Source of the DNA: Rebecca billardiae RCC1528
Taxonomy: Eukaryota; Protista; Haptophyta
Length of the DNA stretch: 64,000 nt
Assembly: GCA_965240325.2 (NCBI GenBank)
Contig: OZ251230.1
Coordinates: 2,762,667-2,826,666, forward strand
Reading direction: 5' to 3'
Shown piece after piece: positions 1 through 62,783 of this stretch (within the stretch, counting starts at the first letter, position 1; each line of letters opens with the position of its first letter). The translations under genes were made by a program, and so were the position numbers. Below the pieces are notes generated by a model. That model was not told the DNA's origin, did not search any database, and saw only the letters and a list, made by a program, of their open reading frames with translations.

Positions 1-1633
1 CCACGACGTGCAGCTCGAGTACAGCCGGTAGAAGTGCGTGCCCAGCTCGGAGGTGCCGCCGTGCTCGTCGACGGGCGAGTCGTCGCGCTTCATCTCGCAC
101 ATCGAGGCGCCCAGCAGCAGCGCGCGCTGCACGAGGCGCTCGTACCAGAGGCGGCCGTCGCCGAGCATGATCTCGTGGTGCAGCGGGTGCCCGCTCAGCA
201 GGCCGAGCTGCGCGGGCGTCACGCCGACGAAGACGGCCACCTGCGCCGAGCGCGGCGGGCGGGGCGGCGCGGGCGGCGCGGGCGCGGCGTCGGCGGGCGG
301 CGCTGGCGCGCGGCGCGGGCCGCGGGCGCGCGCCGGCGTGCGCGCGGGCGCAGCGCGCGAGCCGCGGTGCGGCGCGGCGCGGCGCGCCGCCCAGCGCCTC
401 CGCGCACCTGCTCCGTCCACTGCAGGTGGTTGTGCCACCACGCCCACAGCGCGCGCCCGCCGATCGGCGGGAAGGAGCCCGCGCTCCACGCGTAGCTCTT
501 GCGGTCGCCCGGCACGACGAAGGTGTTGGCGTAGCCCTTCTCCTCGTGCTTGTTGGTGCCCGTGTGCCCGATGCAGAAGAGCGTGAGCGAGTGCGGCGCG
601 CGCCACTCCTCCTGCTCGCGCAGGAAGCGCACGCCCACCGTGAACCAGTGCTCGAGCGGCGCCGAGCCCGCGGGGCGCACGTCGTTCACCTCCGCCCACG
701 CCGTCATCGGCATCGCCATCTGGTGCGCGTAGCCCTCGGGGTAGAGGCGGATGTGGCACGCCGCGCCGCCCTCCGCGTCCTTGCACGCGCTGTCCCCGTG
801 CGCGATGATCTCGTGCGCGGTCACGTGCGTCCCGTTCTGCACCAGGTGGAAGTGGTGCTGGTGCAGCGGCGGGAAGTCGAGCAGCTGCAGCGAGGCCGAG
901 GTCGAGCCGAGGTAGGAGCCGGTGATGCGCGGCAGCGGGCCGAGGAGCGGGTGCAGCACGCGGAAGGTCTGCGCGCCGGGGCGCGCGCGCGGAGGAGGGC
1001 GGGGAGCGCGCGGAGCTCGGCGCGCGACGGGGCCGCGGGCCTCGGCGGTCGTACGCGCGCGCGCGCGCGCGCCCGCGCCCGCGGCCGCGCGCTCGCCCGC
1101 GCGCGCGCACGCACCGCCTCGGTCCACGAGTACCCGCCCGTCGTCGTGATCGGCCCGACGCGCACGAAGACCCAGTCGCCCTCCGTGCCGGCGGTCGTGC
1201 CGTTCGACGGGTCGATCGTCGTGACGCACCACTCCTTCCAGTGCGGCCCCTTGGAGCGGCGGTAGCTGCCCGGCAGCGTGAGCATCGGCCCGTCCGACAC
1301 GCGCACGGGCGGCGCGCCGCCGACGTACCGGCGGAAGTCGCACGACGCCATCGCGCGCTCGATCGCGAGGCGCTGCTTCTTGCGCGTGTTCGGGTGCGGG
1401 AACATCGCCTTGCAGAACTCGCGGTACTCCTTGTCGCGGTGCCGGTCGCACGTCTCGTGCGACTCGACCCACGGCCGCGCGGCGGGCACGGGGCGCTCGG
1501 GCGCGACGGGCACGGCGCGCGCGCCGCCGAGCGCGGCGGCGAGGGCGGAGACGAGCAGCGCCGCGCGCGCCGTGGCGTGCCGCCGCCGCGGCGCGCGGGC
1601 GCCCATCGCGCCGGCACGCGCCGCCTCCGCCAT
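1..1633 (-). CDS. Uncharacterised secreted/membrane-anchored His-motif protein, 3 exons seen (1633-1115, 968-408, 240-<1), runs off the window edge
   Basis: ATG at 1633 and a hydrophobic leader (AALLVSALAAALGGARA). GT..AG introns 1114-969 and 407-241 join WTEA|TFRVLH and WTEQ|VAVFVG in frame. His motifs PPLHQHHFHL, IIAHGDSAC and WWHNH. Confidence 0.75.
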
Positions 1634-2056
1634 CGGGTGGGCGCAGCAAGGGAGGGCACGGGAGAGATCCTCGGTTTCGCGGCCAGTCGCCGGGGCGGCT
1701 GCTGCCCAAAACACGGTCACGCATGCGCGATATGCCGTTCAATTGCTAATCGATTTTACTCTGCACATCAGGCGCAGCTGCTAAAATTAAGTTCTATGAT
1801 AGTAATTCCGGTATGCCGGCTGCGCGTCAGCTCGGAATGCCACGGCTACCTTTAGCAACGACTGACTTAATGACGTCGAATGACTGCAACAAGGGAGTTC
1901 GCTTGGTGTCGCGTCGAAGGCAACCGTCGTCGCGGCGAGCATCAGTTCCCGCGGGAGAGTACTCACCGCGGCGGCGCCTGCTGTCCACGAGACCCCGAGG
2001 CGTCACTCACCGGACCGTGGGAGACTGGCAGCCGCACCACGACTCAGTCAGCCAGC

Positions 2057-3622
<1,566 letters not shown>

Positions 3623-3828
3623 TCATCATTCATCTGTGAGTCAGTTGTCTTGCCTGGTAGCTACTAGTAAGTATTAGTAGAATGCTGAGAGCTTGATAGT
3701 TGATCACGCGGAGTTCGTACGGCTAGTGCTGGCCCTGGCAGCTGGAGCTGCGGCGCAGCACGACCGGCGCCATCAGCGCCGCGCGCTCGCGGCGGCAGCG
3801 CAGCTGCCCGCATGCGACGCAGCCCGGC

Positions 3829-4719
3829 TCAGCCGCCGCTCGACACGCCGCCCATGTAGTCCGTGTCGCCGCGCACGCGCGCGCGCAGCCGGCGCGCCTC
3901 GTGCACGTCCTTTGGCGTGAAGTGCTCGGTGTGCGTCGTCGTCCACTGGCCCGCGTGCGGGTCCCACGTGTACCCGGCGGCGCGCGCGCGCGCCTCGTCG
4001 GTGTCCGAGATCGCGTACGGCCGCGGCCGCGCCTGGCGCGACGAGTACGCCGCCGGCTGCACGGGCAGCGGCTCGACGCCGCGGTCGGCGTTCTGCCGCT
4101 GCGCCGCCGTCACGTAGCGGCCCGCGGCGCCGTCGGCGCCGTCGCCGCCGCCGCGCCCGCCGTCCTCGAGCGCGTAGGGCAGCGGCCGGCCGTAAAAGTC
4201 GGCGCCGCGGTGGCGCTCGACGGGGCCCACGCCGTCCCACCCGCCGCCGTCGCGGAACTGCCGCTGCGTCGCGCTGAGGTACCGCTCGCTGTCGGCGCCG
4301 TCGCGCGCGCCCGCGCCGTCGGCGGCGTCGCGGCCGTCGTGCCGCGCGTACGGCAGCGGCCGGCCGTGGAAGTCGGCGCCGCGGTGGCGCTCGGGGCGCT
4401 GGAGGCCGTCGGCGGCGGTGAAGGCGCGGTGCGTCGCGCTCACGAAGCGCTCCGGGTCCTCGTCCGCGCCCGCGTCGCGCGCGTACGGCAGCGGCAGGCC
4501 GGCGAAGTCGTAGTGCGCGCTGCGCGGCCGCGGCCGCGCCCAGTGGCGCCGCTCCTCCTTGGGCGTGAAGTCGCGCTTGTACGTCGAGAGGTAGGGCTGC
4601 GGCACGAGCGGCGCCTCCTGCACGAGCGTCCGCCGCGGCGACGTCGCGCGGCTGATCAGCGCGAGCCGCGACGGCGTGCCCGCGGGCGGCTTGGCGCTGG
4701 CGGGGCGGGCGGCGGCCAT
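3829..4719 (-). CDS. Repeat protein (296 aa), possible axonemal microtubule-inner protein with Mn-like motifs
   Basis: ATG at 4719 and GC3-biased codons. Internal repeats ERHRGADF-GRPLPYA, plus STYKRDF, SATHRAF, SATQRQF and TTHTEHF motifs. Confidence 0.6.
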   Translation of the reverse strand: MAAARPASAKPPAGTPSRLALISRATSPRRTLVQEAPLVPQPYLSTYKRDFTPKEERRHWARPRPRSAHYDFAGLPLPYARDAGADEDPERFVSATHRAFTAADGLQRPERHRGADFHGRPLPYARHDGRDAADGAGARDGADSERYLSATQRQFRDGGGWDGVGPVERHRGADFYGRPLPYALEDGGRGGGDGADGAAGRYVTAAQRQNADRGVEPLPVQPAAYSSRQARPRPYAISDTDEARARAAGYTWDPHAGQWTTTHTEHFTPKDVHEARRLRARVRGDTDYMGGVSSGG

Positions 4720-4817
4720 GGGGCCGGCCGTTGAGAACCCCCGCCGTTTGAAGGCGCAGCCGTCCGGCCGGGTGGTCCGGGACTCACTTTTCTCGCAGGA
4801 TGGCGAGCGGCTCTTGA

Positions 4818-5741
4818 TCACTCCGCCCGCTTCTCCACCACCGCCGCGAGCGCGCAGAGGCGGCGCTTGCGGCTGATCGCCTCGAGGTCGACGCCGAGCA
4901 CGAACTTGGCGAAGCGCACGACCGAGTCCACGGTGAAGAGCACGTTCGTCAGCAGCATCGCGCCGATCGCGACGCAGCCCGCGCAGAAGAGCGCGGTGTC
5001 GCCGCTCGCGCGCAGCATCGCGAGCAGCCGCCACGCGAGCGCGCCGAAGCGCGTGCAGCGCGCGTGGACGAACATGAGCATCGCGAGCGTCGCGAGGAGC
5101 TGCATCTGCAGCCGCTGCCGCCTGCGCGCCAGGTCGAGCGAGAGCACGTAGTAGTTGATGCCGAGCGCGGCCGCGCTCGCCGCCTGCAGCAGGAACACGA
5201 GCTCGTGGTACGCACCGGACTCGGCGTGGCGCACGTTCATCGGCAGCACCATCAGCAGGCCCAGCGCGTGGTGGGTGACGCAGATCGCCATCAGCAGCGG
5301 CGGCGTGAGCTGCGCGCCGCGCGGGTGCGCCCGCCACTCGCGCGCGCGCGTGAGCAGGTCCTGCAGCTCCCAGCCCGCCTCCGACGCGGCGCCGTGGCAC
5401 GCGAGGCGCGCGGCGAGGCGCGGCGGGAGGCCGAGCGCGGGGCAGACGGCGGGGAGGCAGAGCAGCCCGCCGCACAGGTGCTGCGCGATGCACGCCATCC
5501 CGCGGCACGTCGCCTCGAGCACGCAGTCGCCGTGGTCGACGCCCGCGCGCGCGCACGCGCGGCCGATGCGCTGCACGTACGCGGCGCGCTGCGGCCACGC
5601 GGCGAGGCGCGCGTGGACGCGCGCCTCGATCCGCGGCAGGACCGCCGCCCAGAGCAGCGCGAAGCCCAGCACGAGCGTGAGCTGCGCCCGCCACGTGGGC
5701 GCGCACCGCAGCAGCTCGTCGAGCGAGGGCAGCACCGCCAT
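4818..5741 (-). CDS. TLC (TRAM/LAG1/CLN8)-like multi-pass membrane protein
   Basis: 307 aa with several hydrophobic helices, a THH motif (ICVTHHALGLL) and a downstream FVHAR, typical of TLC domains. Confidence 0.7.
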   Translation of the reverse strand: MAVLPSLDELLRCAPTWRAQLTLVLGFALLWAAVLPRIEARVHARLAAWPQRAAYVQRIGRACARAGVDHGDCVLEATCRGMACIAQHLCGGLLCLPAVCPALGLPPRLAARLACHGAASEAGWELQDLLTRAREWRAHPRGAQLTPPLLMAICVTHHALGLLMVLPMNVRHAESGAYHELVFLLQAASAAALGINYYVLSLDLARRRQRLQMQLLATLAMLMFVHARCTRFGALAWRLLAMLRASGDTALFCAGCVAIGAMLLTNVLFTVDSVVRFAKFVLGVDLEAISRKRRLCALAAVVEKRAE

Positions 5742-47800: not shown

Positions 47801-49069
47801 GCCTATTATTGCGATTTTCGCGATTAATGCGAGAACTCGGCCGCGCTGATTTCAGGCGAGCTGGCTCCTCGCGCGCCGCACCGCCCGGTGGGTGGAGTCG
47901 ACGGAACCAGGGGTTAGGGCCAACTGTCAGGCCTTGTGGGAGCGCGCCGAGTGCACCCGCGCGCCCGGCGGCGGCGCGCGGCTGCATAATATATGCTGAT
48001 TTTCGCGATTAATGCGAGGTCTCGGCCGCGCTGATTTCAGGCGAGCTGGCTCCTCGCGCGCCGCACCGCCCGGTGGGTGGAGTCGACGGAGCCAGGGGTT
48101 AGGGCCAACTGTCAGGCCTTGTGGGAGCGCGCCGAGTGCACCCGCGCGCCCGGCGGCGGCGCGCGGCTGCCTAATATGCTGATTTTCGCGATTAATGCGA
48201 GGTCTCGGCCGCGCTGATTTCAGGCGAGCTGGCTCCTCTCGCGCCGCACCGCCCGGTGGGTGGAGTCGACGGAACCAGGGGCTAGGGCCAACTGTCAGGC
48301 CTTGTGGGAGCGCGCCGATTGCACCCGCGCGCCCGGCGGCTGCGCGCGGCTGCCTATTATTGCGATTTTCGCGATTAATGCGAGAACTCGGCCGCGCTGA
48401 TTTCAGGCGAGCTGGCTCCTCGCGCGCCGCACCGCCCGGTGGGTGGAGTCGACGGAACCAGGGGTTAGGGCCAACTGTCAGGCCTTGTGGGAGCGCGCCG
48501 AGTGCACCCGCGCGCCCGGCGGCGGCGCGCGGCTGCATAATATATGCTGATTTTCGCGATTAATGCGAGGTCTCGGCCGCGCTGATTTCAGGCGAGCTGG
48601 CTCCTCGCGCGCCGCACCGCCCGGTGGGTGGAGTCGACGGAGCCAGGGGTTAGGGCCAACTGTCAGGCCTTGTGGGAGCGCGCCGAGTGCACCCGCGCGC
48701 CCGGCGGCGGCGCGCGGCTGCCTAATATGCTGATTTTCGCGATTAATGCGAGGTCTCGGCCGCGCTGATTTCAGGCGAGCTGGCTCCTCTCGCGCCGCAC
48801 CGCCCGGTGGGTGGAGTCGACGGAACCAGGGGTTAGGGCCAACTGTCAGGTCTTGTGGGAGCGCGCCGAGTGCACCCGCGCGCCCGGCGGCGGCGCGCGG
48901 CTGCATAATATATGCTGATTTTCGCGATTAATGCGAGGTCTCGGCCGCACTGATTTCAGGCGAGCTGGCTCCTCGCGCGCCGCACCGCCCGGTGGGTGGA
49001 GTCGACGGAACCAGGGGCTAGGGCCAACTGTCAGGTCTTGTGGGAGCGCGCCGAGTGCACCCGCGCGCC
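44888..49069. repeat. Subtelomeric satellite, ~23 units of 183/185 bp
   Basis: GATTAATGCGAGGTCTCGGCCGC recurs every 183 or 185 bp. Each unit carries GGGGTTAGGG or GGGGCTAGGG. Confidence 0.98.
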
Positions 49070-49637
49070 TAGAAGTATGTTTTCTCGAGATTGACCGAGC
49101 CAAATTCTCTCAAAATTGGAGGGCCCTTAGCGCTTCCCATTTCCATGGCAGAGCCCAAGTCTCGTTGAAATCGGTTCGGTCAATGTACATTGTACATTCG
49201 GAAATGTACATTGTACATTTGGAATGTACTACATTGTACATTCGGATACATTTGATCATCAGATGTACTGTTGCAATGTACATTCGGATACATTCAGATG
49301 TACAATCAAGCAGTGTACAGAGTGTACAAAGTGTACAAATGTGTACATTCAAAATGTATACAATAGTGTACATTCATATGTACAATCAAGAAGTGTACAA
49401 AGTGTACAATATACCGTCAGAATCTACATTCGGATACATTCAGAGGAATGAGCAAAAACATACAGAGTGTACAGATATGTACAGTCAAAAACGTACTTTC
49501 GCGCCTGCAGTCTCAGAGCACAGCACCGGTCGATGCAGGCCCCGCCCCGCCCCCCCATCTGAAGCCTAGTCCTACTTGACTCTGGTGAGCAGCAACTGGT
49601 GAGAGCAGCTGCTCGTACATACGTCCTAGTTCTGTGC
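49070..49637. repeat. Telomere-junction cassette copy 0 (internally deleted, distally truncated)
   Basis: Starts TAGAAGTATG like copies 1 and 2. Lacks ~589 bp including the 18-mer array and ends at GTTCTGTGC. Confidence 0.9.
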
Positions 49638-49653
49638 TACTGGGTTAGAAGTA

Positions 49654-51695
49654 CACAGTAAAGAAATCGATTTTCGGCGTTACCGTAACCCGTCCGCACT
49701 TCCGCCCAGTGGGGATGCGGGGGAATTGTTTTCATGCCGCGTTCGCGGCACTTCGCGCCGCCACAGTGGAGAAAGATCGGGCCGAAGCCGTTTGAGCATG
49801 GTCGGTTGTGGGCACGCCCATTCGAATCGATGGCGCGCTCCGAGCGGCGGGCATGCGCGCATGTGTGCCGCGAGGGGGGCTGCGAGGCGTCGGCCGGCTT
49901 GCCAAGGCGGTTCCCCGGGGCGGCATCACCCTCGCCCGCCCCTCCTCGCCCACCCTCGCCCCACGGGCGGCCACACGTGACCTGTTAAGATGAGTTCACG
50001 GGAGCCGCACGGCACGCGCGCGGAGAGGCGAGGAAGTGGTGTTTCGCGGAAAAACGCTCTATAGCATTGTGCTCAACCCATGTGGTCACCCGCTCCACAA
50101 GTTTGTACGCCGCCAAACCGCACACAGCGGCCTGAGCAGCTCCCAGACTGAGTTTCGCTCTTGAAGCCTGTTTTTGGGCCAGATCTTGGTGTGGATGTAG
50201 CGCGGCGAGGAGGCGCCGGGCGCGCGCCCGAGCTGCGTGCTGGCACTCGCCATGACCCATAGGCATCGTCCGTCGCGAACGACCCGGCTCGCCTCGACCT
50301 CTCCGACCCGCCGGGCAGCCACGACCGAGCACGGCACGACAATGGCCAAACCGGGAGGCTTCTCAGACCGCGCGGGATGGGCATAGGCGCGAGAGAGGGC
50401 GCCCAGCGCGCTCTTGAGATGCACAGGAGCACGCACTGATGCGTATGGAACCATCCCATCACGATCGCCCCGACCTGGCGCGCCCTATCTGGCCCGTCAG
50501 GCTGCCCGCGCCGCCGCCGCCGCGCCACGCCGCCACCACGGGCGCCGCCGCATCACGGGCACATGGGTAAGTCTGTATTCAACAAATACAGAATTTCCGG
50601 TGCGGCCCTCTGTTGGGCGGCAAGGTCGATCTGGTCGACACCTGCCACGCGGCATGGGCCACGGCGCGGCGAGGTGGCGGCTGGCGCACCGCGGCGCGGG
50701 CGGGATGGCTCGAGGACACCACCGCCCCGCCTCCCACGCCGCGCCGTGCGCGTGCGCCGTGCTCTCGTCGCGTACCGAATTTCCTGCGGCGAGCGACAAC
50801 ACACAGCGCGACCATGCCATCGCGCGACGAGCTGCGTTCAGCTCGGCGATTTGTCGTATTTGTTGAATACATGCGGGTACGAATCCGACGCACGACGCCC
50901 TCGACGCACACGTCGAGAGCCACGCGCGCGGCGTGGACTGGCACGCGACGCGGAGATGGCGGGCGCGGTGCCGCGGGCGCGCGACTGGTCTAGAACAGCA
51001 CAATGAAGCGCGGGACGGCGCCGCGCGCGTGGGCTCGCTGCCGTCTCCTCGCAGTCGAATATTTCTGTGCACCCTCCTACCAGGTCAGTCGACCGACTTG
51101 CACGCGGCATGCGAGCACTGCGTGCGGGGAGGAGTGTGACATGGCAGGCTGTGGCGAGGTGGATGGCCGTGCAGGAGTATGCTAGGAAGGGCCGCTCCCG
51201 CGCTCGCGCGGTGCCTCGCGCACGCCTCGTCGAGGACGAGCGTGTTTGAATGGCTCCGGGGAGGCCTGAGACTTCGCTTGTTCACAGCAGCGCGCGACAG
51301 GTGCACACAACGGAGGTGACGACCAGGCACTCCGGCGAGGGCGGCTGTGCTGGCAGCAGACTGCATTCGGAGTAAGATGCGCCATCTTACGCGCCGCTTC
51401 GCCTCGCTGCATCGCCGCACTGAGCAGCAGGGCTCCACGCTCACGAATCTCACGAATGGCTCACCACGAGCTACGTGACCGGCCAGCCGCGTGCAACCCG
51501 GCGAGGCAGAGAGGGGCGGAGGGATGGGGAGGCTGGGTGGAATGTTGCAGTCCCATGCCCGGGGCACTCGTCAGGCGCCTGCGCGGCCACCGTAGCGTCT
51601 TCTGTGCGCTCGTGCGGCCCGCGAGAGAATTTCCCCGAAAATCGGCTCGTGTCGGACGGGTTACGGTAACGATAATCCCGTTTTTGTTCACTGTG
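49654..51695 (+). mobile_element. 2,042-bp non-autonomous CACAGT-ended DNA transposon, TSD TA
   Basis: 43-bp imperfect TIRs (CACAGT...CGTTACCGTAACCCGTCCG). TA at 49652-53 and 51696-97. The empty site GAAG-TA-TGTT is seen at ~49072 and ~54193. No credible ORF. Confidence 0.93.
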
Positions 51696-51700
51696 TATGT

Positions 51701-51814
51701 TTTCTCGAGATTGACCGAGCCAAATTCTCTCAAAATTGGAGGGCCCTTAGCCCTTCCCATTTCCATGGCAGAGCCCAAGTCTCGTTGAAATCAGTTCGGT
51801 CAATCTCGAGAAAT
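51701..51814. repeat. Inverted-repeat block with 18-bp arms TTTCTCGAGATTGACCGA (also 54201-54314; partial at 49081-49184)
   Basis: The arms are exact reverse complements around a ~78-bp spacer. Confidence 0.93.
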
Positions 51815-51852
51815 TCTCATTTTAGTACTGACGACCCTAACCACCACCCTAA

Positions 51853-52135
51853 CCCTAACCCTTACCTGCGCCCTAACCCTTACCTGCGCCCTAACCCTTA
51901 CCTGCGCCCTAACCCTTACCTGCGCCCTAACCCTTACCTGCGCCCTAACCCTTACCTGCGCCCTAACCCTTACCTGCGCCCTAACCCTTACCAGCGCCCT
52001 AACCCTTACCTGCGCCCTAACCCTTACCTGCGCCCTAACCCTTACCTGCGCCCTAACCCTTACCTGCGCCCTAACCCTTACCTGCGCCCTAACCCTTACC
52101 TGCGCCCTAACCCTTACCTGCGCCCTAACCCTTAC
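51853..52135. repeat. 18-bp telomere-like array (CCCTAACCCTTACCTGCG), ~15 units, inverted relative to the telomere
   Basis: Directly visible tandem repeat. Confidence 0.97.
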
Positions 52136-52145
52136 CCTCACCCTC

Positions 52146-52700
52146 ACATTGTACATTTGGAATGTACATTGTACATTTGGAATGTACATTGTACATTTGG
52201 AATGTACATTGTACATTCGGAAGTGTACATTGTACATTTGGAATGTACATTGTACATTCGGAAGTGTACATTGTACATTTGGAATGTAGTACATTGTACA
52301 TTCGGAAATGTACTTTGTACATTTGGAATGTACATTGTACATTCGGAAGTGTACATTGTACATTTGGAATGTAGTACATTGTACATTTGGAATGTACATT
52401 GTACATTCGGAAATGTACATTGTACATTTGGAATGTACTACATTGTACATTCGGATACATTTGATCATCATGCAGATGTACTGTTGCAATGTACATTCGG
52501 ATAAATTCAGATATGTACAATCAATCAGTGTACAGAGTGTACAAAGTGTACAAATGTGTACATTCAAAATGTATACAATAGTGTACATTCATATGTACAA
52601 TCAAGAAGTGTACAAAGTGTACAATATACCGTCACAATCTACATTCGGATACATTCAGAGGAATAAGCGAAAACATACAGAGTGTACAGATATGTACAGT
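52146..52700. repeat. AT-rich TGTACA(TT)-based repeat tract (also 60755-61305 and 49184-49485)
   Basis: TGTACATTTGGAATGTACAT units that decay distally. Confidence 0.93.
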
Positions 52701-53255
52701 CAAAAACGTACTTTCGCGCCTGCAGTCTCAGAGCACAGCACCGGTCGATGCAGGCCCCGCCCCGCCCCCCCATCTGAAGCCTAGTCCTACTTGACTCTGG
52801 TGAGCAGCAACTGGTGAGAGCAGCTGCTCGTACATACGTCCTAGTTCTGTGCGGGGAGTATCCCTCAATAATGTGGTTGGCATCAGCACCAGCCAGTCGA
52901 TCTCGAGTTGCAGCTGTGAGCTGTCAATCATCGATGACGAGACCTCGATGATGACAACGACAGTTGATAGGGCAAATCAAGCGCATGGCTGCTAAGCAGA
53001 GTGGCTGTGGCAGAATAGTATGCTGCGGTGCGGACGAGTGCAGCACCTGTCAAAGCTCAGCTCAAGCGCTGAGCACCTGTCAAAGCTGCCCCCGCCCCGC
53101 CCCCCCATCTTGCTCTTGGCTCAACCTGCACAGGGGGCGCGCACAGAGCAGCACCCATTGCATGCCACAGCTCAAGCAAGCAGAGGGGACGATTGCTCTC
53201 CAGCCTTGTCAACGTGCGCAAGCGGATCCTTGACCGCCCATCTCAGAATGATTTG

Positions 53256-54179
53256 CCCAGCTCGGCAGAGTCGGCCGGCCCAGAGCCTCCTGGGCCGCCA
53301 GACACGCCGCCCCAGCCGGCCGCCACCGGGTCGAAACGGCCGCGGCTGGTAACCTCACTCAGGGTAGATGTCTCTTTGGGCCTAACCTCACCACTGCGCG
53401 CCCAGTGCGCAGCCGGCGCGCAGCCTGGCGCCAGCCCTCCCAGCCCAGCTGGAGCCGGCCTGGGAGGCTCTGGGCAGCCCAGCTCGGCCCACTCGGCCGG
53501 CCCAGAGCCTCCTGGGCCGCCAAACACGCCGCCCCAGCCGGCCCCCACTGGGCCGAAACGGCCGCGGCTGGTAACCTCACCCAGGGTAGATGTCTCTTTG
53601 GGCCTAACCTCACCACTGCGCGCCCAGTGCGCAGCCGGCGCGCAGCCTGGCGCCAGCCCTCCCAGCCCAGCTGGAGCCGGCCTGGGAGGCTCTGGGCAGC
53701 CCAGCTCGGCCCACTCGGCCGGCCCAGAGCCTCCTGGGCCGCCAAACACGCCGCCCCAGCCGGCCCCCACTGGGCCGAAACGGCCGCGGCTGGTAACCTC
53801 ACCCAGGGTAGATGTCTCTTTGGGCCTAACCTCACCACTGCGCGCCCAGTGCGCAGCCGGCGCGCAGCCTGGCGCCAGCCCTCCCAGCCCAGCTGGAGCC
53901 GGCCTGGGAGGCTCTGGGCAGCCCAGCTCGGCCCACTCGGCCGGCCCAGAGCCTCCTGGGCCGCCAAACACGCCGCCCCAGCCGGCCCCCACTGGGCCGA
54001 AACGGCCGCGGCTGGTAACCTCACCCAGGGTAGATGTCTCTTTGGGCCTAACCTCACCACTGCGCGCCCAGTGCGCAGCCGGTGCGCAGCCTGGCGCCAG
54101 CCCTCCCAGCCCAGCTGGAGCCGGCCTGGGAGGCTCTGGGCAGCCCAGCTCGGCCCACTCGGCCGGCCCAGAGCCTCCT
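53256..54179. repeat. 222-bp tandem array, ~4.1 units
   Basis: CAGAGCCTCC at 53281, 53503, 53725, 53947 and 54169. Confidence 0.96.
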
Positions 54180-54624
54180 AGGTTTAGGGTTAGAAGTATG
54201 TTTTCTCGAGATTGACCGAGCCAAATTCTCTCAAAATTGGAGGGCCCTTAGCCCTTCCCATTTCCATGGCAGAGCCCAAGTCTCGTTGAAATCAGTTCGG
54301 TCAATCTCGAGAAATTCTCCACAGTAAAGAAATCAATTTTCGGCGTTACCGTAACCCGTCCGGCGGCCCGCCCAGTGGGCGGAGCGATGTCCTGTTTTTT
54401 CACCCTTCGGCGCCGCCGCTCGCGGAAGACCAGTGGACAGCTTCGGGCCGAGCGTCGTTCAAGCGACGAGCCGAGCGCCCCGCCCGTCGACCCGATCGCC
54501 AGGTATCGTGGCCGTACCGCGCGGCGTACGCGGCGCGCTGCGGCCGCGCGCGATGATGACCCATGCCACAGTGCCCCAACCCCCCGCGTAGGCACCACGG
54601 AGCCCGTCACCAACCTCTCCTTCG

Positions 54625-55617
54625 ATGGTCGAGCGGTACAACGGTGCGCGCGCCGCGAGACTCGACCCGCGCGCGCTCGCGCGCGCGCGCGCGGCGAGGC
54701 GGCGGGCGGATGCGAGATATCTTTCTATAGCATTTCGCCCAACTCACCCACGAACCACGCCCGCATGTTTGTACGCCGTCAATCCGCACACAGCGTCCCC
54801 TGCAGCCCGTGGACTGATTTTCGCTCTTGCAACTGACACGCCGCCGCGCCCCGCGGCGCGCACGGCGCGCGCAGGAGAGGAGGGCCGGAAGCGACCCAGG
54901 GCGCCGACCGCCGCGAAGAAGGTGGTGAAGAAGGCCAAGCTGGGCAGCTCGCCGCCGGCGACCGGCCCCCCGCGCCTCGCGCCGATGCCGATCACCATGG
55001 AGATCGACCTCGCGCCGTGGGTCTCGGACTTCCTCTACATGATGTGGAAGGCGGCGGCGTCGACGTGCCGCGCGGATGGGCGGCACTTCAAGGAGTACCG
55101 GGCGGACCCGATGCCGTGGCAGGTGTTCAAGCACCTGATGACGTGGCTGCTCGAGGGCACGGAGTCGTACATCATGGCGGACCTCGACCCGCGCATCTCG
55201 TACTCGGAGACGGCGGCGCGGCGCACGCACACGGTGCGGCTCACGGACATGCAGCACCTCTCGCGCCGGCTTGGCTTCGGCCAGCTGAAGGCGGACGCGT
55301 CGGTGGCGACGGCGCGGCAGAGCGCGAAGGGCAACCTGAACGCGGTGATCGAGGTGGAGGCGGTGCACGTCACGCGGCGCAACCCGGCGACGTGGCGCAA
55401 GCGCGAGTCGGTGACCGTGCGAGTCTGGCTGGCCGCGGTCAACGCGACGGGGCGCGTGTCGCTGCCGGAGGCGCGGTACACGGCGGCGGAGGAGGCGGCC
55501 ATCACGACGTACATGCGCTCGCTCACGGTGCAGGGCAAGGCGGCGGGCAAGCCGATCAACCCGCAGATGCACCGCGCGCTCCGCCAGGTGGCCAAGGCGC
55601 AGCGCCGCTCGCAGTGA
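54625..55617 (+). CDS. Transposon ORF1 of unknown function (basic NLS-like stretch + ~200-aa globular region); probable intron 54644-54874
   Basis: Strong GC3 bias from 54875 and the basic stretch RKRPR..KKVVKKAK. Donor G|GTGCGC, CTGAC branch-like site and acceptor GCGCAG are phase-compatible. Confidence 0.7.
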   Translation: MVERYNGARAARLDPRALARARAARRRADARYLSIAFRPTHPRTTPACLYAVNPHTASPAARGLIFALATDTPPRPAARTARAGEEGRKRPRAPTAAKKVVKKAKLGSSPPATGPPRLAPMPITMEIDLAPWVSDFLYMMWKAAASTCRADGRHFKEYRADPMPWQVFKHLMTWLLEGTESYIMADLDPRISYSETAARRTHTVRLTDMQHLSRRLGFGQLKADASVATARQSAKGNLNAVIEVEAVHVTRRNPATWRKRESVTVRVWLAAVNATGRVSLPEARYTAAEEAAITTYMRSLTVQGKAAGKPINPQMHRALRQVAKAQRRSQ

Positions 55618-56096
55618 GCGGCAGCGCGCCGCGCGCGCCCGGCGCGCCGCGCGCGCCGCGCGCGCCGCGCGTGCCGCACGCGCCGAGCGAGGGCGGCGGC
55701 GCGGGCGGCGGCGCGGGCGGCGATGGCGGCGGCGGCGGCGGCGGCGGCGGCGCTGGCGGCGGCGGTGGCGCTCACGGCGGCCGAGGCGGCGGCGGCGCTG
55801 GCGGCGGCGCTGGCGGCGGTGCTGATGACGGTGGTGGCGGCGGCGGCGGCGCTCGCACTGCCGCGCCCGAGCTCGCGCGCGGCGCGGCTGACACGGGCGC
55901 GGCTCACGTCGGCGCGGCTGACGACGAGCACGATGCTGGCGGCGCAGACGGCGCGGCCGGCGCAGGCGGCGCAGGCGCGCGCGGCGCGGTCGGAGCGGCA
56001 GCGGCCACAGCGCCTCCGCCGCGGGCGCTCGCGGCAGCCGAGGACGACGGCTCGCCGCTCGGCCCGCTACTCGTTGTCCGGCTCAGCTTGAGCGGG

Positions 56097-59000
56097 ATGC
56101 GGGGTTGGACCAAGCGGGCGCCGCCGTCGCTCCAGCGGCGAGATCATCTCGTGCGCGCTCGTGCGCAGCTGCAGGCGACTCGCGCGGCCGCGGGCGGCGA
56201 GCGCGCGGCGGTGGCGGCGCCCTTCCCGGCGCCGCTCGCCGCCGCTCGCGGCGGCGCGCTCGTGCCGCTGGCCGATGCCGCGCGCGCGGGCTCGCCCGCG
56301 CCGCAGCCCGCGGCGCGCCGGACGCCGCGCGCGCCGCGCGCGCAGCCCGCCGCGCCGCCGCGCGTGCTCGTCGTGTCGACGATTGGGTCGGTGCCGTCGC
56401 CCGCCACGCCGGACGGCGCGGCGGCGGGTGCAGCGACAAGAGCCGCTGCCGCCTCCGCGTCACGCACCGTGCGCACCACCGCGCTCGCGCCGATCGTCCC
56501 GCACATCACGCGCCGCGCTCTCGCCGACGCGACCAACGCGGCGGCGAGCAGCGACGCCTGGCTGCAGCGGGAGGCGCAGTCGACGGTCGAACTCAACGAG
56601 GAGAACCGGCGGCTGCACGCGCGCAACTACGAGCTCGCGCGGACCGAGCAGGCGTCGCTCCGCCTGCTCGCGCGCACCCGCGCCGAGAAGACCGATCTCC
56701 TCGCCCAGAACGACGAGCTGCGCGCCGAAGTCGAGCAGCAGCGCGAGCGCGCGGACGCGCGCGCGGAGGCGGCAAAGAAGTCGCAGCGCAAGCTCGCCGC
56801 CGCTCGCGCCGCCGCTCGCGCCGCTCGCACCGGGCTGCTGCGTCGTGAGGGGCACGCGCATAACGACGGTCTCCGCATCGCGCAGGTCGAGGAGGAAAGC
56901 CTCGAGCAGGCGGAGCAGATCGACGAGCTCAACGCGCAGATCCTCGAGCAGTCGGAGGAGATCGATGCGCTCAACGCGCGGCGCCTCGAGCGCGAGGAGG
57001 AGTTCGCCGAGCTCGAGGCGAATTTTTTGAGGTTCGAGGCCGTCGGCGAGGAGCACGTGGGCGCGCTCGAGCGCGAGATCGATTGGCAGGGCGCGCAGCT
57101 CGCGGCGCTCGAGCGGCGCGACAAGGAGCGCAAGGAGCAGCGCAGCTCGGCCGCGGTCAAAGCTGCGGCGCGAGAGCGCGAGGCGGCCGCGCTGGCGCGC
57201 GCGGATGCCGAGGCCGCGAGCGCCAAGGTGGCCGCGCTCAAGAAGGAGAGGACGCGGCTGGCGGACGCGAAGCGCGCGAGCGAGGCTCGCCGCGCTGCGA
57301 GCAGTGCGCGCTTGTGCTTACTCAACCCCGCCCTGCGCCAGCGCGGCCGTCCGACCGCCGCCGGGCGCGACGATGCGAGCAGCGGCAGCGGCTGCGACGG
57401 CGGCGACTCGGACAGCAGCAACGACGGCGACGGCCCCGGCGGCGGCTTGAACAAAGCAGCGGAACGCGTGAGGCGGCACCGCGCGCGGGCCGACATCCGC
57501 GCCGTGAGCGATCGCTTCGGCGGCGGCGGCGACTCGGCGCTCGACTCGCTCCTCTTCGCCAACGGCGGCCTCGCCGCGCGCCTCAAGGGCCAGCCGCACT
57601 TTGACAAGTTCGTCCACGGCATCCGGCGGGAGCACTCGCGGAAGGTGGGGGAGACGCTGTTCGCGCTCGACAGGACGACGGACCTCTTCATCCACGCCAA
57701 CCTGTCGACGCGCTCTGTGCACCTGACTCGCGAGGTGATGGGCTTCGAGTACTCGCTCACCACGGGCGAGCGCAAGCAGCGCGCCGTCGACGGCGTGCCG
57801 GTGCCGCTCCCGCTGTCGTGCTACATCATCACCAAGGAGGTGAGACGGCGGCTCGGCGCGCTCGGCGTGCGCCTCGCGGACGGCACCGAGGGCAAGGCGG
57901 CCGTGATGGACTGCACGCTCGCGCTGTGCCGCCTGCTCGTGGAGGCGCGCGCGCTCTCGGGCTCGAACCCGCTCGACGACGTCGGCGGCCCCGTCTTCGC
58001 GCTCAAGTTCGACTCGGCGGAGATGGGCCGATCGATCCACATGATGCTCGCCAGCATCTCGTACCCGATGGTCGGCGTGGGCGCGCAGTCGGAGGGCCAG
58101 CACAAGACGATCGGCGTCGCGGTGGGCAAGGACGAGATGATCGGCACGGTGCTCGACGCCAACCGCGAGGAGGTGGAGCGCCTCTGCCTCCGTCGGCGCA
58201 TCCGCCTGCCCAAGTGCGCGCGCAAGAAGCTGTCCGAGGTCAGCTCGCGCGACAAAGCGGCCGGGCTCGCGTTCGAGAAGCTGATGTGCGACCTGTGCGC
58301 CAAGGTGGAGGAGGGCGGCTGCAGCGGCGGCTGCTGCGAGGAGTGGGACGAGCTGGTGGCGCAGATGATCGCGGTCGCCGACGACGCGGCGAAGCGCAAG
58401 CTGCTCGGGCTCACGACGCACACCGCCAAGTTCGGCTCCATCGACTACGTCGACGCAGTCTCCGACCTCGTCACGCCGGGCTACGAGCCGACGCCGAGGA
58501 ACATCGTGAGCATGTACCACTCGGCGCACGTGCCGTTCCCGGGCGATCCGGAGGGCCCGGTCAAGTGCCCGTGCTGCTCGTACTGGGCGCCCAGCCACGC
58601 GCAGGCGCGCAAGGACCGCGCGGCGGACGACGCGCGCTTCGCCAAGGACGCGCTCGCGCGGCAGCAGCGCGGGTCGTCGCACGCTGGCCAGCTCTACGCG
58701 CCGCAGCTGCCGATCCCGATGACCAACGTGATCACGCCGATCATGCACCTCCTCGAGAACGCGTTCAGCTACGCGCACACGCACGCGATGTGGAACTACC
58801 CGGCGACTGTCATCTCGGGGCTCAGCGACTTCACCGAGGCGAAGAGGACGCGCCTGCTCAACTGCGTGCGGTACGACGCCGTCGAGATCCTGCAGACGAT
58901 GGGCATCCGCGCTGCGAAGCTGCCGCCGCGGCGCGGAGACGACGTGAGCGAGCCGAAGTTCCTCTTCACCGAGGTGCGCACGCTCATCAGCTCGCTGCCC

Positions 59001-59870
59001 TTCATCTTCTACGTCGTGGCGCTGTGCGCGCACGTCCACGACCTCGTGCGCCGCGAGCGCGCGGCCGCCGGCGCCGCAGCGCCGCCGCCGCCGCCGCCGC
59101 CTGCGGCAGCGCCGAGGCCCGCTGCGCGGCCGGAGCCGTACCAGGCCCTGATGGACGCGCTCGCGGACGAGTCGGACTCGGAGGACGAGGACGACGCGCC
59201 GGCCGCGCGCGCAAGGTCGGACGCGCAGGCAGCGCTCGAGATGGAGGACGACGACTTCACGCAGGCGTTGAAGGTGTGCCGCATGCTCCAGGCGTACGGC
59301 GAGTTCGAGATGGCCGTCTCGTCCACCGACTACCGCCACGACGACCGTGCTGAGCGCGAGGCCCACGCTGCTCGCGTCGCCGAGGTCGGCCGCGAGTTCC
59401 TCAAGCGGCGCGGCCAGGCGCTGCCGGCGAGTGAGCACGCGTGCTCGGTGTACGATGTGGTGATCCTGCACAAGCTGCCGGCGGACCTGCGCCGGTGGGG
59501 GCACATCATCGTGCACGGGCGCGAGGACGGCCAGGAGAAGAAGAACCAGGAGGCCAAGGCCATCTCTCGCCGGTGCGTGCGGCGCCTGACCAAGTTCGTC
59601 TCGTACGTGAAGAAGAACGGCACGCGCGTGGACGTGCAGCGCACGATGTCGCTGCAGATCGCCGAGCGGGTCGCGCTCAAGGAGCAGGTGCAGCTGAGGA
59701 TGGGCACGTACGTCAAGCACCTCGCCGTGCACGCCAGCGGCCACTGGCGGCAGGACCAGCTCGACCAAGGCTACTCGGTCAAGCGCGCGCGCTCGCAGTT
59801 CACGAGCGAGCTCGAGGAGCAGATCGCCAAGCGCGGCAAGCACGACATGGACGCGTGGATGAAGCGTTGA
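56097..59870 (+). CDS. Transposase: long coiled coil followed by a RAG1/Transib-like DDE core (start uncertain; may be spliced to ORF1)
   Basis: FALKFD (Asp codon 58011), IAVADDAAKRKLLGL (58380), PIMHLLEN (His 58746) and YDVVILHKLPADLRRWGHI..EDGQEKKN (Glu 59535) parallel the RAG1 D600, D708, H795 and E962 regions. The frame is uninterrupted. Confidence 0.8.
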   Translation: MRGWTKRAPPSLQRRDHLVRARAQLQATRAAAGGERAAVAAPFPAPLAAARGGALVPLADAARAGSPAPQPAARRTPRAPRAQPAAPPRVLVVSTIGSVPSPATPDGAAAGAATRAAAASASRTVRTTALAPIVPHITRRALADATNAAASSDAWLQREAQSTVELNEENRRLHARNYELARTEQASLRLLARTRAEKTDLLAQNDELRAEVEQQRERADARAEAAKKSQRKLAAARAAARAARTGLLRREGHAHNDGLRIAQVEEESLEQAEQIDELNAQILEQSEEIDALNARRLEREEEFAELEANFLRFEAVGEEHVGALEREIDWQGAQLAALERRDKERKEQRSSAAVKAAAREREAAALARADAEAASAKVAALKKERTRLADAKRASEARRAASSARLCLLNPALRQRGRPTAAGRDDASSGSGCDGGDSDSSNDGDGPGGGLNKAAERVRRHRARADIRAVSDRFGGGGDSALDSLLFANGGLAARLKGQPHFDKFVHGIRREHSRKVGETLFALDRTTDLFIHANLSTRSVHLTREVMGFEYSLTTGERKQRAVDGVPVPLPLSCYIITKEVRRRLGALGVRLADGTEGKAAVMDCTLALCRLLVEARALSGSNPLDDVGGPVFALKFDSAEMGRSIHMMLASISYPMVGVGAQSEGQHKTIGVAVGKDEMIGTVLDANREEVERLCLRRRIRLPKCARKKLSEVSSRDKAAGLAFEKLMCDLCAKVEEGGCSGGCCEEWDELVAQMIAVADDAAKRKLLGLTTHTAKFGSIDYVDAVSDLVTPGYEPTPRNIVSMYHSAHVPFPGDPEGPVKCPCCSYWAPSHAQARKDRAADDARFAKDALARQQRGSSHAGQLYAPQLPIPMTNVITPIMHLLENAFSYAHTHAMWNYPATVISGLSDFTEAKRTRLLNCVRYDAVEILQTMGIRAAKLPPRRGDDVSEPKFLFTEVRTLISSLPFIFYVVALCAHVHDLVRRERAAAGAAAPPPPPPPAAAPRPAARPEPYQALMDALADESDSEDEDDAPAARARSDAQAALEMEDDDFTQALKVCRMLQAYGEFEMAVSSTDYRHDDRAEREAHAARVAEVGREFLKRRGQALPASEHACSVYDVVILHKLPADLRRWGHIIVHGREDGQEKKNQEAKAISRRCVRRLTKFVSYVKKNGTRVDVQRTMSLQIAERVALKEQVQLRMGTYVKHLAVHASGHWRQDQLDQGYSVKRARSQFTSELEEQIAKRGKHDMDAWMKR

Positions 59871-60317
59871 GCGATCGGTGAGCGCGCCGCCGCGCCACCG
59901 GCCGCAGGACGCGCGCGCGCGCGCGCGCACGTCCTCATGGCCGCGCCGCCCCACCCGCGCCTGCGCACCTACCTTACACGCTTTGCCGTACAGGACGAGC
60001 ACGGGCCAGCAGTGCGCCGCTCGACCAGTGACGCGTCCGACTGCCGGCCGACGGCTCGGCGCGCGCGCGCGCGCGCGCGATCGCGCGAGCAGCTGGTCGA
60101 CCTGATGCCGGCGCTGATGGGCAGCGCCAGCTCGCTCGCACTCAGGCCCCTGACGGTGCCCATAGTGCGCGCTCGTCCGCGGCATAGGGGCCGTCAAAGG
60201 GGCACTTCGCAGAAAGCTGTAATAAAACCTGTGAATTTCGGACGGTTTGCTGTAACGATTTAATTGTTTTTGTTCACTGTGTCATTTTAGTACTGGCGAC
60301 CCTAACCACCACCCTAA

Positions 60318-60745
60318 CCCTAACCCTTACCTGCGCCCTAACCCTTACCTGCGCCCTAACCCTTACCTGCGCCCTAACCCTTACCTGCGCCCTAACCCTT
60401 ACCAGCGCCCTAACCCTTACCTGCGCCCTAACCCTTACCTGCGCCCTAACCCTTACCTGCGCCCTAACCCTTACCTGCGCCCTAACCCTTACCTGCGCCC
60501 TAACCCTTACCTGCGCCCTAACCCTTACCTGCGCCCTAACCCTTACCTGCGCCCTAACCCTTACCTGCGCCCTAACCCTTACCTGCGCCCTAACCCTTAC
60601 CAGCGCCCTAACCCTTACCTGCGCCCTAACCCTTACCTGCGCCCTAACCCTTACCTGCGCCCTAACCCTTACCTGCGCCCTAACCCTTACCTGCGCCCTA
60701 ACCCTTACCTGCGCCCTAACCCTTACCTGCGCCCTAACCCTTACC
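60318..60745. repeat. 18-bp telomere-like array, ~23 units
   Basis: Same unit as 51853-52135, but the array is 144 bp longer. Confidence 0.97.
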
Positions 60746-61860
60746 CTCACCCTCACATTGTACATTTGGAATGTACATTGTACATTTGGAATGTACATTG
60801 TACATTTGGAATGTACATTGTACATTCGGAAGTGTACATTGTACATTTGGAATGTACATTGTACATTCGGAAGTGTACATTGTACATTTGGAATGTAGTA
60901 CATTGTACATTCGGAAATGTACTTTGTACATTTGGAATGTACATTGTACATTCGGAAGTGTACATTGTACATTTGGAATGTAGTACATTGTACATTTGGA
61001 ATGTACATTGTACATTCGGAAATGTACATTGTACATTTGGAATGTACTACATTGTACATTCGGATACATTTGATCATCAGATGTACTGTTGCAATGTACA
61101 TTCGGATAAATTCAGATATGTACAATCAATCAGTGTACAGAGTGTACAAAGTGTACAAATGTGTACATTCAAAATGTATACAATAGTGTACATTCATATG
61201 TACAATCAAGAAGTGTACAAAGTGTACAATATACCGTCACAATCTACATTCGGATACATTCAGAGGAATAAGCGAAAACATACAGAGTGTACAGATATGT
61301 ACAGTCAAAAACGTACTTTCGCGCCTGCAGTCTCAGAGCACAGCACCGGTCGATGCAGGCCCCGCCCCGCCCCCCCATCTGAAGCCTAGTCCTACTTGAC
61401 TCTGGTGAGCAGCAACTGGTGAGAGCAGCTGCTCGTACATACGTCCTAGTTCTGTGCGGGGAGTATCCCTCAATAATGTGGTTGGCATCAGCACCAGTCA
61501 GTCGATCTCGAGTTGCAGCTGTGAGCTGTCAATCATCGATGACGAGACCTCGATGATGACAACGACAGTTGATAGGGCAAATCAAGCGCATGGCTGCTAA
61601 GCAGAGTGGCTGTGGCAGAATAGTATGCTGCGGTGCGGACGAGTGCAGCACCTGTCAAAGCTCAGCTCAAGCGCTGAGCACCTGTCAAAGCTGCCCCCGC
61701 CCCGCCCCCCCATCTTGCTCTTGGCTCAACCTGCACAGGGGGCGCGCACAGAGCAGCACCCATTGCATGCCACAGCTCAAGCAAGCAGAGGGGACGATTG
61801 CTCTCCAGCCTTGTCAACGTGCGCAAGCGGATCCTTGACCGCCCATCTCAGAATGATTTG

Positions 61861-62624
61861 CCCAGCTCGGCAGAGTCGGCCGGCCCAGAGCCTCCTGGGC
61901 CGCCAGACACGCCGCCCCAGCCGGCCGCCACCGGGTCGAAACGGCCGCGGCTGGTAACCTCACTCAGGGTAGATGTCTCTTTGGGCCTAACCTCACCACT
62001 GCGCGCCCAGTGCGCAGCCGGCGCGCAGCCTGGCGCCAGCCCTCCCAGCCCAGCTGGAGCCGGCCTGGGAGGCTCTGGGCAGCCCAGCTCGGCCCACTCG
62101 GCCGGCCCAGAGCCTCCTGGGCCGCCAAACACGCCGCCCCAGCCGGCCCCCACTGGGCCGAAACGGCCGCGGCTGGTAACCTCACCCAGGGTAGATGTCT
62201 CTTTGGGCCTAACCTCACCACTGCGCGCCCAGTGCGCAGCCGGCGCGCAGCCTGGCGCCAGCCCTCCCAGCCCAGCTGGAGCCGGCCTGGGAGGCTCTGG
62301 GCAGCCCAGCTCGGCCCACTCGGCCGGCCCAGAGCCTCCTGGGCCGCCAAACACGCCGCCCCAGCCGGCCCCCACTGGGCCGAAACGGCCGCGGCTGGTA
62401 ACCTCACCCAGGGTAGATGTCTCTTTGGGCCTAACCTCACCACTGCGCGCCCAGTGCGCAGCCGGCGCGCAGCCTGGCGCCAGCCCTCCCAGCCCAGCTG
62501 GAGCCGGCCTGGGAGGCTCTGGGCAGCCCAGCTCGGCCCACTCGGCCGGCCCAGAGCCTCCTGGGCCGCCAAACACGCCGCCCCAGCCGGCCCCCACTGG
62601 GCCGAAACGGCCGCGGCTGGTAAC
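61861..62624. repeat. 222-bp tandem array, ~3.4 units, truncated by the telomere
   Basis: Same unit as 53256-54179. Breaks at CTGGTAAC|TAGG. Confidence 0.96.
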
Positions 62625-62783
62625 TAGGTTAGGGTTAGGTTAGGTTAGGGTTAGGGTTAGGGTTAGGGTTAGGGTTAGGGTTAGGGTTAGGGTTAGGGTT
62701 AGGGTTAGGGTTAGGGTTAGGGGTTAGGGTTAGGGTTAGGGTTAGGGTTAGGGTTAGGGTTAGGGTTAGGGTTAGGGTTAGGG

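Follow-up and report, generated by a model that had tools for sequence, protein, structure and literature searches.

Subtelomeric cassettes and their inverted-repeat units

The window, i.e., the whole stretch of 64,000 nt that was analysed, ends in a terminal (TTAGGG)n telomere tract, which begins at position 62625 and runs to 64000 on the + strand. The tract places the structure described here at most 13 kb from the chromosome end, and the subtelomeric setting proposed in the preliminary description is thus borne out. Every subtelomeric cassette has the same fixed beginning, a unit that adjoins telomeric bases. One inverted-repeat unit is 124 nt in length and displays two opposed 18-bp arms with 77 nt between them. 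The arm 18-mer, TTTCTCGAGATTGACCGA, contains the palindrome TCTCGAGA, a dyad-symmetric 8-mer, and the near-palindrome TTTCTCGAGA lies within the outer part of the arm.

Arm copies are found five times in the 64 kb, where none is expected. Unit 0 has a left arm only (49081-49098, + strand), its partner arm having been lost by deletion. Unit 1 has a left arm at 51701-51718 (+ strand) and a right arm at 51796-51813 (- strand), and the arms of unit 2 are at 54202-54219 (+ strand) and 54297-54314 (- strand). Two of the five arms have a transposon on the outer side: element 1 at the left arm of unit 1, and element 2 at the right arm of unit 2. The other three are unoccupied.

The 124-nt unit has no Rfam match at the gathering score. 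A known RNA was considered as its identity and rejected, the sole Rfam match being a miRNA hairpin at 25.8 bits against a cut-off of 100 bits. When GTDB was scanned with the 18-mer, 25 bacterial matches came up, about the chance number in 596 Gb, and these were discarded.

Two insertions in mirror orientation

Element 1 (49654-51695, + strand) is a non-autonomous element of 2,042 bp with the ends CACAGTAAAG...TTCACTGTG. Copies of its TSD, TA, are at 49652-49653 and 51696-51697, and a 3-bp spacer, TGT (51698-51700), separates the right TSD copy from the left arm of unit 1. Element 2 (54320-60281, + strand) has the same termini, is 5,962 bp in length and is apparently autonomous. It is separated from the right arm of unit 2 by a 3-bp spacer, TTC (54315-54317), followed by the left copy of its TSD, TC (54318-54319); the right copy is at 60282-60283. 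The geometry claimed in the preliminary description, whereby both elements lie a TSD plus 3 bp outside an 18-bp arm, is exact to the base. The two elements are on opposite arms, at an identical offset from an identical 18-mer and in mirror orientation, and relative to the unit their insertion points form a symmetric pair, one at each outer edge, with 121 bp between them. From the centre of each insertion to the TCTCGAGA dyad is exactly 10 bp, or one helical turn. When the two sites are aligned as mirror images, 18 of 21 bases are common to both; aligned in the same orientation, they have almost nothing in common. No family insertion away from the arms is found in the 64 kb, and the element ends are present only four times.

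Each insertion has an unoccupied counterpart. The TA site equivalent to that of element 1 is intact and unoccupied at 54197-54198, and the TTC-TC site equivalent to that of element 2 is intact at 51814-51818. For reconstruction of the empty sites, each element was removed together with one TSD copy, and the result was compared with the paralogous cassette. The reconstructed site of element 1, GTTAGAAG-TA-TGTTTTCTCGAG, is an exact match to 54190-54211, and that of element 2, GAGAAATTC-TC-ATTTTAGTAC, is an exact match to 51806-51826. The exact matches therefore identify two genuine, separate insertions with 2-bp TSDs, and the target motif pre-exists at the empty sites in the paralogous cassettes, i.e., it was not brought by the element.

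The two elements agree at 90% over their first 60 bp, at 76% over one internal block of 107 bp and fully over the last 16 bp; the remainder is unrelated, and the sizes are 2.0 kb and 6.0 kb. As the elements are unlike in both size and sequence, they represent separate events. Thus the independence of the two insertions, also claimed earlier, is upheld by the empty sites and by the divergence of the elements. The two cassettes that carry the insertions (cassettes 2 and 3) are subtelomeric and 99.5% identical with one insertion each, and the insertions therefore postdate the cassette duplication. Both are recent, cut-and-paste insertions. A single ancestral insertion moved by rearrangement was rejected, given that the elements and their TSDs differ and both empty sites exist. 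Also rejected was the unit as a MITE inserted beside the transposons, since the empty sites show that the unit came first.

Coding capacity and relatives of the elements

The family 5′ end is CACAGTAAAGAAATC and the 3′ end is GTTTTTGTTCACTGTG; element 1 has in addition a subterminal GTTACCGTAACCCGTCCG that is inverted at both ends. That the arm imitates the ends of the element was considered and rejected, the best ungapped match being 13/26. In element 2, ORF1 ends at 55617 and the transposase reading frame extends from about 56100 to 59870. The transposase has a long N-terminal extension and carries the motifs KFD, ADD, CPCC and HIIVH-GRE. Relatives do not conserve the second histidine of H(3)H, and two glutamates, in HLLEN and REDGQE, are candidates.

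A predicted model of the transposase (pLDDT 61 overall, above 80 in the core) was compared with known folds. RAG1 accounts for all 27 best VIA rows, with Z scores of 10.0-11.3 over 290-370 residues; the predicted fold aligns with mouse RAG1 residues at about 532-966, and the next unrelated fold has a Z of 5.4. A Foldseek search with the model agrees weakly with a RAG1-like fold. At the sequence level the transposase has no Pfam family at E ≤ 1, and a profile search of PDB sequences gave no RAG1 match. ORF1 yielded no family or fold lead, and no DNA-binding domain is recognisable in either ORF1 or the transposase.

Searches for further copies gave little. Word-indexed protein searches with the transposase core, and with an ORF spanning the left junction of element 2, produced no match. 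A scan of JGI metagenomes was empty by protein profile and by 5′-end DNA pattern, as were a GTDB scan with the element 5′ end and a scan of viral contigs. Neither the junction nor a neighbouring gene matched any listed sequencing run. The sole public trace is one Logan contig of 1 kb, which lies inside element 2.

Distant relatives, at 30-40% identity, have TSDs of AG, GG and probably TA, the last from the 3′ flank of relative L033, which begins with TA and is AT-rich. A 2-bp TSD is present in four of four family insertions: TA in element 1, TC in element 2, AG in L002 and GG in L003. The termini are CACAGT...ACTGTG in elements 1 and 2, L002 and L033, and CACGGTG...CACCGTG in L003. L003, L030 and L031 (GCA_026770615.1) are decayed fragments with clean ends in L003 only, and L004, L032 and L034 are too short to hold ends. 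Among distant relatives three insertions are datable (L002 and L003, each by both flanks, and L033 by its 3′ flank), and these have no flank motif in common; no inverted repeat was found beside L002, the only relative scanned for one. Relatives elsewhere thus lie beside unrelated flanks, and any preference for the arm would therefore belong to this lineage and not to the wider family.

Choice of target and comparison with known systems

The probability of a mirror match was assessed by drawing insertion points in pairs, at random, from the reconstructed empty sequence. A match required both points to have one 18-mer in common (17 or more of its 18 bases) at the same offset, within 0-10 bp. With points drawn from the cassette array, 0.0175% of pairs are of the mirror type and 0.26% of any type; with points from the whole window the values are 0.0035% and 0.0115%. 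When only array positions of at least 70% AT are used, the mirror type rises to 0.28% and the direct type to 2.4%. Of 5,000 positions drawn at random from outside the array, none had a perfect arm of at least 18 bp within 0-6 bp. Even a null adjusted to favour coincidence leaves it unlikely. The mirror layout is real and looks non-random, and at n = 2 events it no more than hints at aimed insertion.

Arm-directed choice of target is the best reading of the two events, with a probability of roughly 0.4. We infer that the arm is the thing recognised, by its sequence rather than its structure, and by a protein of the element. One of the transposon's own proteins, ORF1 or the transposase (which is extended at its N-terminus), would read duplex DNA at the outer end of the 18-bp arms, where the near-palindrome is the part read, and strand transfer with a 2-bp stagger would then be set 3 bp outside the arm. 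Because the arms are inverted, the same mode of recognition would give two mirror-image sites 121 bp apart, one for each element. Against arm targeting are the number of events, which is only two, the unrelated flanks of relatives and the lack of an inverted repeat at L002. A preference for AT-rich DNA would by itself already concentrate targets in the cassettes. ORF1 and the transposase are also without a recognisable DNA-binding domain, and the arm is unlike the element ends.

The mirror arrangement may instead be a coincidence on top of a coarse preference, for AT-rich bendable DNA or for chromosome ends in general, which we consider rather unlikely. Both insertion sites are 75% AT over 16 bp in a 75%-GC genome, and of the 497 positions in the window with at least 70% AT, 289 (58%) are in the 5.5-kb cassette array; the flank of L033 is AT-rich as well. 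Under the AT-rich null, a shared flank of either type, direct or mirror, arises in about 2.6% of pairs, and it should be noted that the mirror pattern was noticed after the fact. However, the mirror type alone remains at 0.28% under this most favourable null and at 0.0175% without the AT limit, and the large AT-rich TGTACA satellites, which account for most of the AT-rich positions, have no insertion.

Two further explanations place the signal in what is bound to the DNA or in how it folds. The determinant might be a chromatin particle in a fixed position, or a protein of the host, on the arms with their palindrome TCTCGAGA or on the whole 124-nt unit. It would either tether the transposase or shield all DNA except that at the two edges, much as Ty3 is placed by the Pol III machinery. 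The symmetry of the insertion points at the outer edges of the unit would suit a bound factor, as would the 10 bp from each insertion to the dyad-symmetric 8-mer. Bound factors are plausible on a unit that opens every subtelomeric cassette beside telomeric bases, and the element's own proteins have no detected DNA-binding domain. Direct readout accounts more readily for such base-pair precision, however, and we know of no such host factor for this organism; this explanation is judged quite improbable. Slightly more doubtful again is targeting by structure, whereby a RAG1-fold enzyme would prefer the distorted DNA at the base of a stem, either in a cruciform or in a single-strand hairpin formed at the time of replication. 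Of the two targets proposed in the preliminary description, the arm sequence or its cruciform, the cruciform is the weaker, because 18-bp arms that are 77 nt apart do not readily extrude. As single-stranded DNA the unit folds into an 18-bp stem at -28.5 kcal/mol (z = -6.2 against shuffles), and the transposase is predicted to have the appropriate RAG1-like fold. Hairpins and cruciforms are reported to stimulate RAG transposition in vitro, but the RAG targets are hairpin tips (PMC1618415), whereas the insertions described here lie outside the base of the stem. Moreover, L002 is without an adjacent inverted repeat.

Strict choice of target is rare among eukaryotic cut-and-paste transposons and, to our knowledge, not known for the EnSpm/Transib/RAG1-related clade. 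Should the arm direct insertion, the locus would show by what means an enzyme with the RAG1 fold is guided to one particular duplex sequence. It would also be a natural case of a transposon that keeps to harmless subtelomeric repeats, in a genome of the algal type that is compact and gene-dense. The system would moreover be simple and tractable: the site is 18 bp, the offset is fixed at 3 bp, and the 6-kb element appears to be intact. Carried to its full extent, arm-directed targeting would mean that a RAG1-fold CMCT lineage evolved site-directed integration, its own proteins reading an 18-bp subtelomeric sequence and inserting one helical turn from the dyad, and the repeated unit at chromosome ends would give it a safe place to land. 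Within the clade from which the V(D)J recombinase arose, such a lineage would be the first whose insertion is directed by sequence, a proposal that we put forward tentatively. If the arrangement is a coincidence, the locus still records recent activity of an undescribed CMCT lineage with 2-bp TSDs.

The CMCT clade includes EnSpm/CACTA, Mirage, Chapaev, Transib, ESTA and others (Kojima 2025, PMC12730594). The element fits this clade (EnSpm/Mirage/Chapaev/Transib), though not Transib proper, by its combination of a RAG1-like fold in the predicted catalytic core, 5′-CA..TG-3′ termini (here CACAGT..ACTGTG) and TSDs of 2 bp, within the 2-5 bp range of the clade. A C(2)C motif (CPCC) past the second candidate aspartate is a further likeness. 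The element differs from the clade in the lack of a sequence-level match to any Pfam transposase family or to RAG1, in the second H of H(3)H, which is not kept among relatives, and in the possession of a conserved upstream ORF1. We know of no CMCT superfamily in which insertion occurs at a set distance from a particular sequence.

Transib and RAG1-RAG2-like elements resemble the family in a heptamer-like end, CACAGTG, in asymmetric bipartite ends and in the RAG1-core fold (Z 10-11.3). They differ in that the TSD is here 2 bp and not 5 bp, as confirmed by the empty sites, in the absence of detectable sequence similarity to RAG1 or Transib, and in an ORF1 without a detectable family. AanRAGL of the alga Aureococcus also has a second gene upstream in the same direction, but its ends are CACACCCAAACCT (PMC9435367).

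Dada is reported as the first strictly targeted case among eukaryotic cut-and-paste transposons (PMC3706591). It shares with the present elements insertion at a defined position in a multicopy, harmless target, the logic of a "safe haven", but it belongs to another superfamily, targets tRNA and snRNA genes and has many copies across species (PMC3706591). The target here is a subtelomeric palindromic unit, with two copies in support. In Tn7 a dedicated target-selector protein is known. Tn7 (TnsD at attTn7) and the REP-targeting IS likewise recognise a sequence or a palindromic repeat and insert at a fixed position, the latter using repeated extragenic palindromes as harmless landing pads (PMC1525189); both are bacterial, and their transposases are unrelated. 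The transposition of RAG into hairpins and cruciforms also brings together a RAG1-fold enzyme and a target able to form a stem loop. RAG inserts at hairpin tips with 5-bp TSDs (PMC1618415), whereas the insertions at the subtelomeric unit are 3 bp outside the base of the stem and have TSDs of 2 bp.

Palindromic units in the subtelomeric cassettes

The window, with a GC content of about 75%, terminates in a (TTAGGG)n telomere that runs from 62625 to the window end. Adjacent to it are three copies of a subtelomeric cassette, arranged head-to-tail at 49070-62625. Each cassette starts with a few telomeric bases, followed by the fixed string AAGTATG and then by a 124-nt unit that carries a perfect 18-bp inverted repeat at its borders (arm TTTCTCGAGATTGACCGA; spacer of 77 nt). 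The unit is followed on its 3′ side by a C-strand-like array of 18-bp repeats, a satellite rich in TGTACA, unique sequence and 222-bp repeats. The arm is found five times in the 64-kb window, against a chance expectation of zero: at 49081, 51701 and 54202, and on the minus strand at 51796 and 54297. In the first unit the right arm has been lost. Cassettes 2 and 3 match each other over 2.2 kb with an identity of 99.5%. The unit was also considered as a known RNA, but it does not correspond to one.

All cassette joints (49064-49080; 49640-49653 with 51696-51700; 54180-54201) display telomeric G-strand bases, i.e., TAG, GGGTTAG or TTTAGGGTTAG, and then AAGTATG and the arm. The cut point of the preceding cassette varies from joint to joint, and the proximal end of the cassette is the 124-nt palindromic unit in every case. 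The joints look as if cassettes had been added repeatedly to ends that were healed or capped by a telomere. The internal 18-bp array, (CCCTAACCCTTACCTGCG)n at 51853-52136 and 60318-60745, is telomere-like and in C-strand orientation, opposite to that of the terminal (TTAGGG)n. Thus each unit has G-strand bases to the left and C-strand repeats to the right.

Two insertions outside opposite arms

Element 1 (49654-51695, 2.0 kb, without open reading frames) is flanked by the target-site duplication (TSD) TA/TA, and element 2 (54320-60281, 6.0 kb, with intact open reading frames) by TC/TC. Their termini are CACAGTAAAGAAATC at the start and GTTTTTGTTCACTGTG at the end, found nowhere else in the window, and both have the subterminal motif GTTACCGTAACCCGTCCG. 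Their similarity is limited to the first 60 bp (90%), one internal 107-bp block (76%) and the final 16 bp; the two represent distinct members of the family. When either element is removed with one TSD copy, the uninterrupted sequence of the neighboring cassette is obtained, to the base. Thus in both cases a classical insertion took place into a unit that already existed. Despite the near-identity of cassettes 2 and 3, each has only one insertion, and the two events are therefore recent and separate. The independence of the insertions, proposed in the preliminary description, is borne out by the empty paralogous sites, the different elements and the single insertion per cassette.

Outward from the arm, element 1 reads TA-TGT-arm, and element 2, on the other strand, GA-GAA-arm. 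The placement at the same offset outside opposite arms, also described previously, is exact: the 2-bp TSD plus a 3-bp spacer at both sites. In mirror alignment the two sites have 18 of 21 bases in common; in the same orientation only scattered T's coincide.

Chance, possible targeting and the target sites of relatives

Random pairs of insertion points were drawn in the reconstructed empty sequence, and a match was scored when both points had the same 18-mer (at least 17/18) beside them, at an equal offset of 0-10 bp. In the 5.5-kb array, 0.26% of random pairs have any shared flank, nearly all of them same-phase tandem-repeat matches, and 0.0175% are of the observed mirror type; for the entire window the values are 0.0115% and 0.0035%. 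Because each site is in a patch of 75% AT, the assay was repeated with positions of at least 70% AT only (289 in the array, 497 in the window), giving 0.28% for the mirror type and 2.4% for the direct type. Outside the array, a perfect arm of at least 18 bp was never found within 6 bp of a random position. These low rates, together with the mirror alignment, make a pure coincidence of mirror placement unlikely, with the reservation that there are two events and that the pattern was noticed post hoc.

Arm-directed insertion is plausible, as judged from these two events. The favored mechanism, with a probability of about 0.4, is reading of each arm's outer part, as duplex DNA, by a protein that the transposon encodes; the 2-bp staggered strand transfer would thereby be placed 3 bp outside the arm. 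Exactly 10 bp separate the insertion centre from the dyad of the TCTCGAGA core, so that both are on the same helix face. Inverted arms would automatically provide two mirror sites, 121 bp apart. A likeness of the arm to the element's own ends was considered and rejected, as there is no resemblance.

Coincidence superimposed on an AT-rich or regional preference is unlikely, with the higher rates in the AT-restricted assay in its favor. A host factor or chromatin particle bound to the unit, serving as a tether for the enzyme or leaving only the unit edges accessible, is quite improbable. Slightly less probable still is that a cruciform or hairpin is targeted for its structure. The single-stranded unit does fold well (-28.5 kcal/mol, z = -6.2), but cruciform extrusion is unfavorable with a 77-nt spacer. 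Hairpins stimulate RAG in vitro, but RAG inserts at hairpin tips and not at stem bases (PMC1618415).

Among relatives of the elements from outside the window, no inverted repeat adjoins the L002 flanks on either side, and the flanks of L002, L003 and L033 show no relation to each other or to the arm. Thus nothing here suggests palindrome targeting in the wider family, and arm targeting, if real, would be a property of the lineage in the R. billardiae genome only. The sequence AGCTGAAT is found immediately 3′ of the CACYGTG terminus in both L002 (5183-5197; from an ENA metagenome) and L031 (11310-11324; from GCA_026770615.1), i.e., in different sources. It represents either a common target or an asymmetric 3′ end that extends further.

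Element proteins and classification

ORF1, upstream of the transposase gene in element 2 (54625-55617), has a homologue at the equivalent place in L002 (906-1547). It shows no detectable family and no fold lead, and is a candidate for a partner or targeting role. Before the catalytic core, the N-terminal part of the long open reading frame of element 2 (56500-57400) has a stretch of about 300 residues with abundant E, R, A, L and Q, which by eye resembles a coiled coil; comparably long N-terminal extensions are present in the transposase relatives P0002 and P0016. This part is possibly a multimerisation or tethering domain.

The 717-residue C-terminal part of this open reading frame matches no Pfam family. 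When 1.84 billion representatives were scanned exhaustively with HMMER, only 23 relatives were detected. All but one are at most 51% identical (most 27-47%) and come from marine/environmental assemblies and one eukaryotic genome. The exception, and the sole public trace of element 2 found, is L001, a 1-kb Logan contig of run ERR14847151 that is 99.8% identical to 59078-60087; it covers the 3′ part of the transposase gene and the downstream region, with low-complexity tracts at both ends.

The AlphaFold model of the transposase has a mean pLDDT of 61, rising to more than 80 in the core. Its top PDB matches are all RAG1 (Foldseek E 0.04-1), and VIA-align to RAG1 gives Z 10.0-11.3 over 290-370 residues, with the next fold at Z 5.4; no match to RAG1 was found at the sequence level. 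The protein displays the motifs KFD, ADD, CPCC and HIIVH-GREDGQE. All four family insertions datable by their flanks have 2-bp TSDs without a fixed sequence: TA and TC here, AG in L002 (insertion at 323-5189) and GG in L003 (9925-12869). By our own arithmetic, four dinucleotide matches would arise by chance about once in 65,000.

The CMCT clade (EnSpm, Mirage, Chapaev, Transib, ESTA and others) is characterized by CA..TG ends, a TSD of 2-5 bp, a C(2)C motif and similarity to RAG1 (PMC12730594). On these traits the element is filed under this clade as a novel and highly divergent lineage; arm-directed insertion, if true, would be a new behavior for the clade. The element is not placed in the strict Transib/RAG-like group: that group, like the Aureococcus RAGL element (PMC9435367), has a 5-bp TSD, whereas the TSD of the present element is 2 bp.
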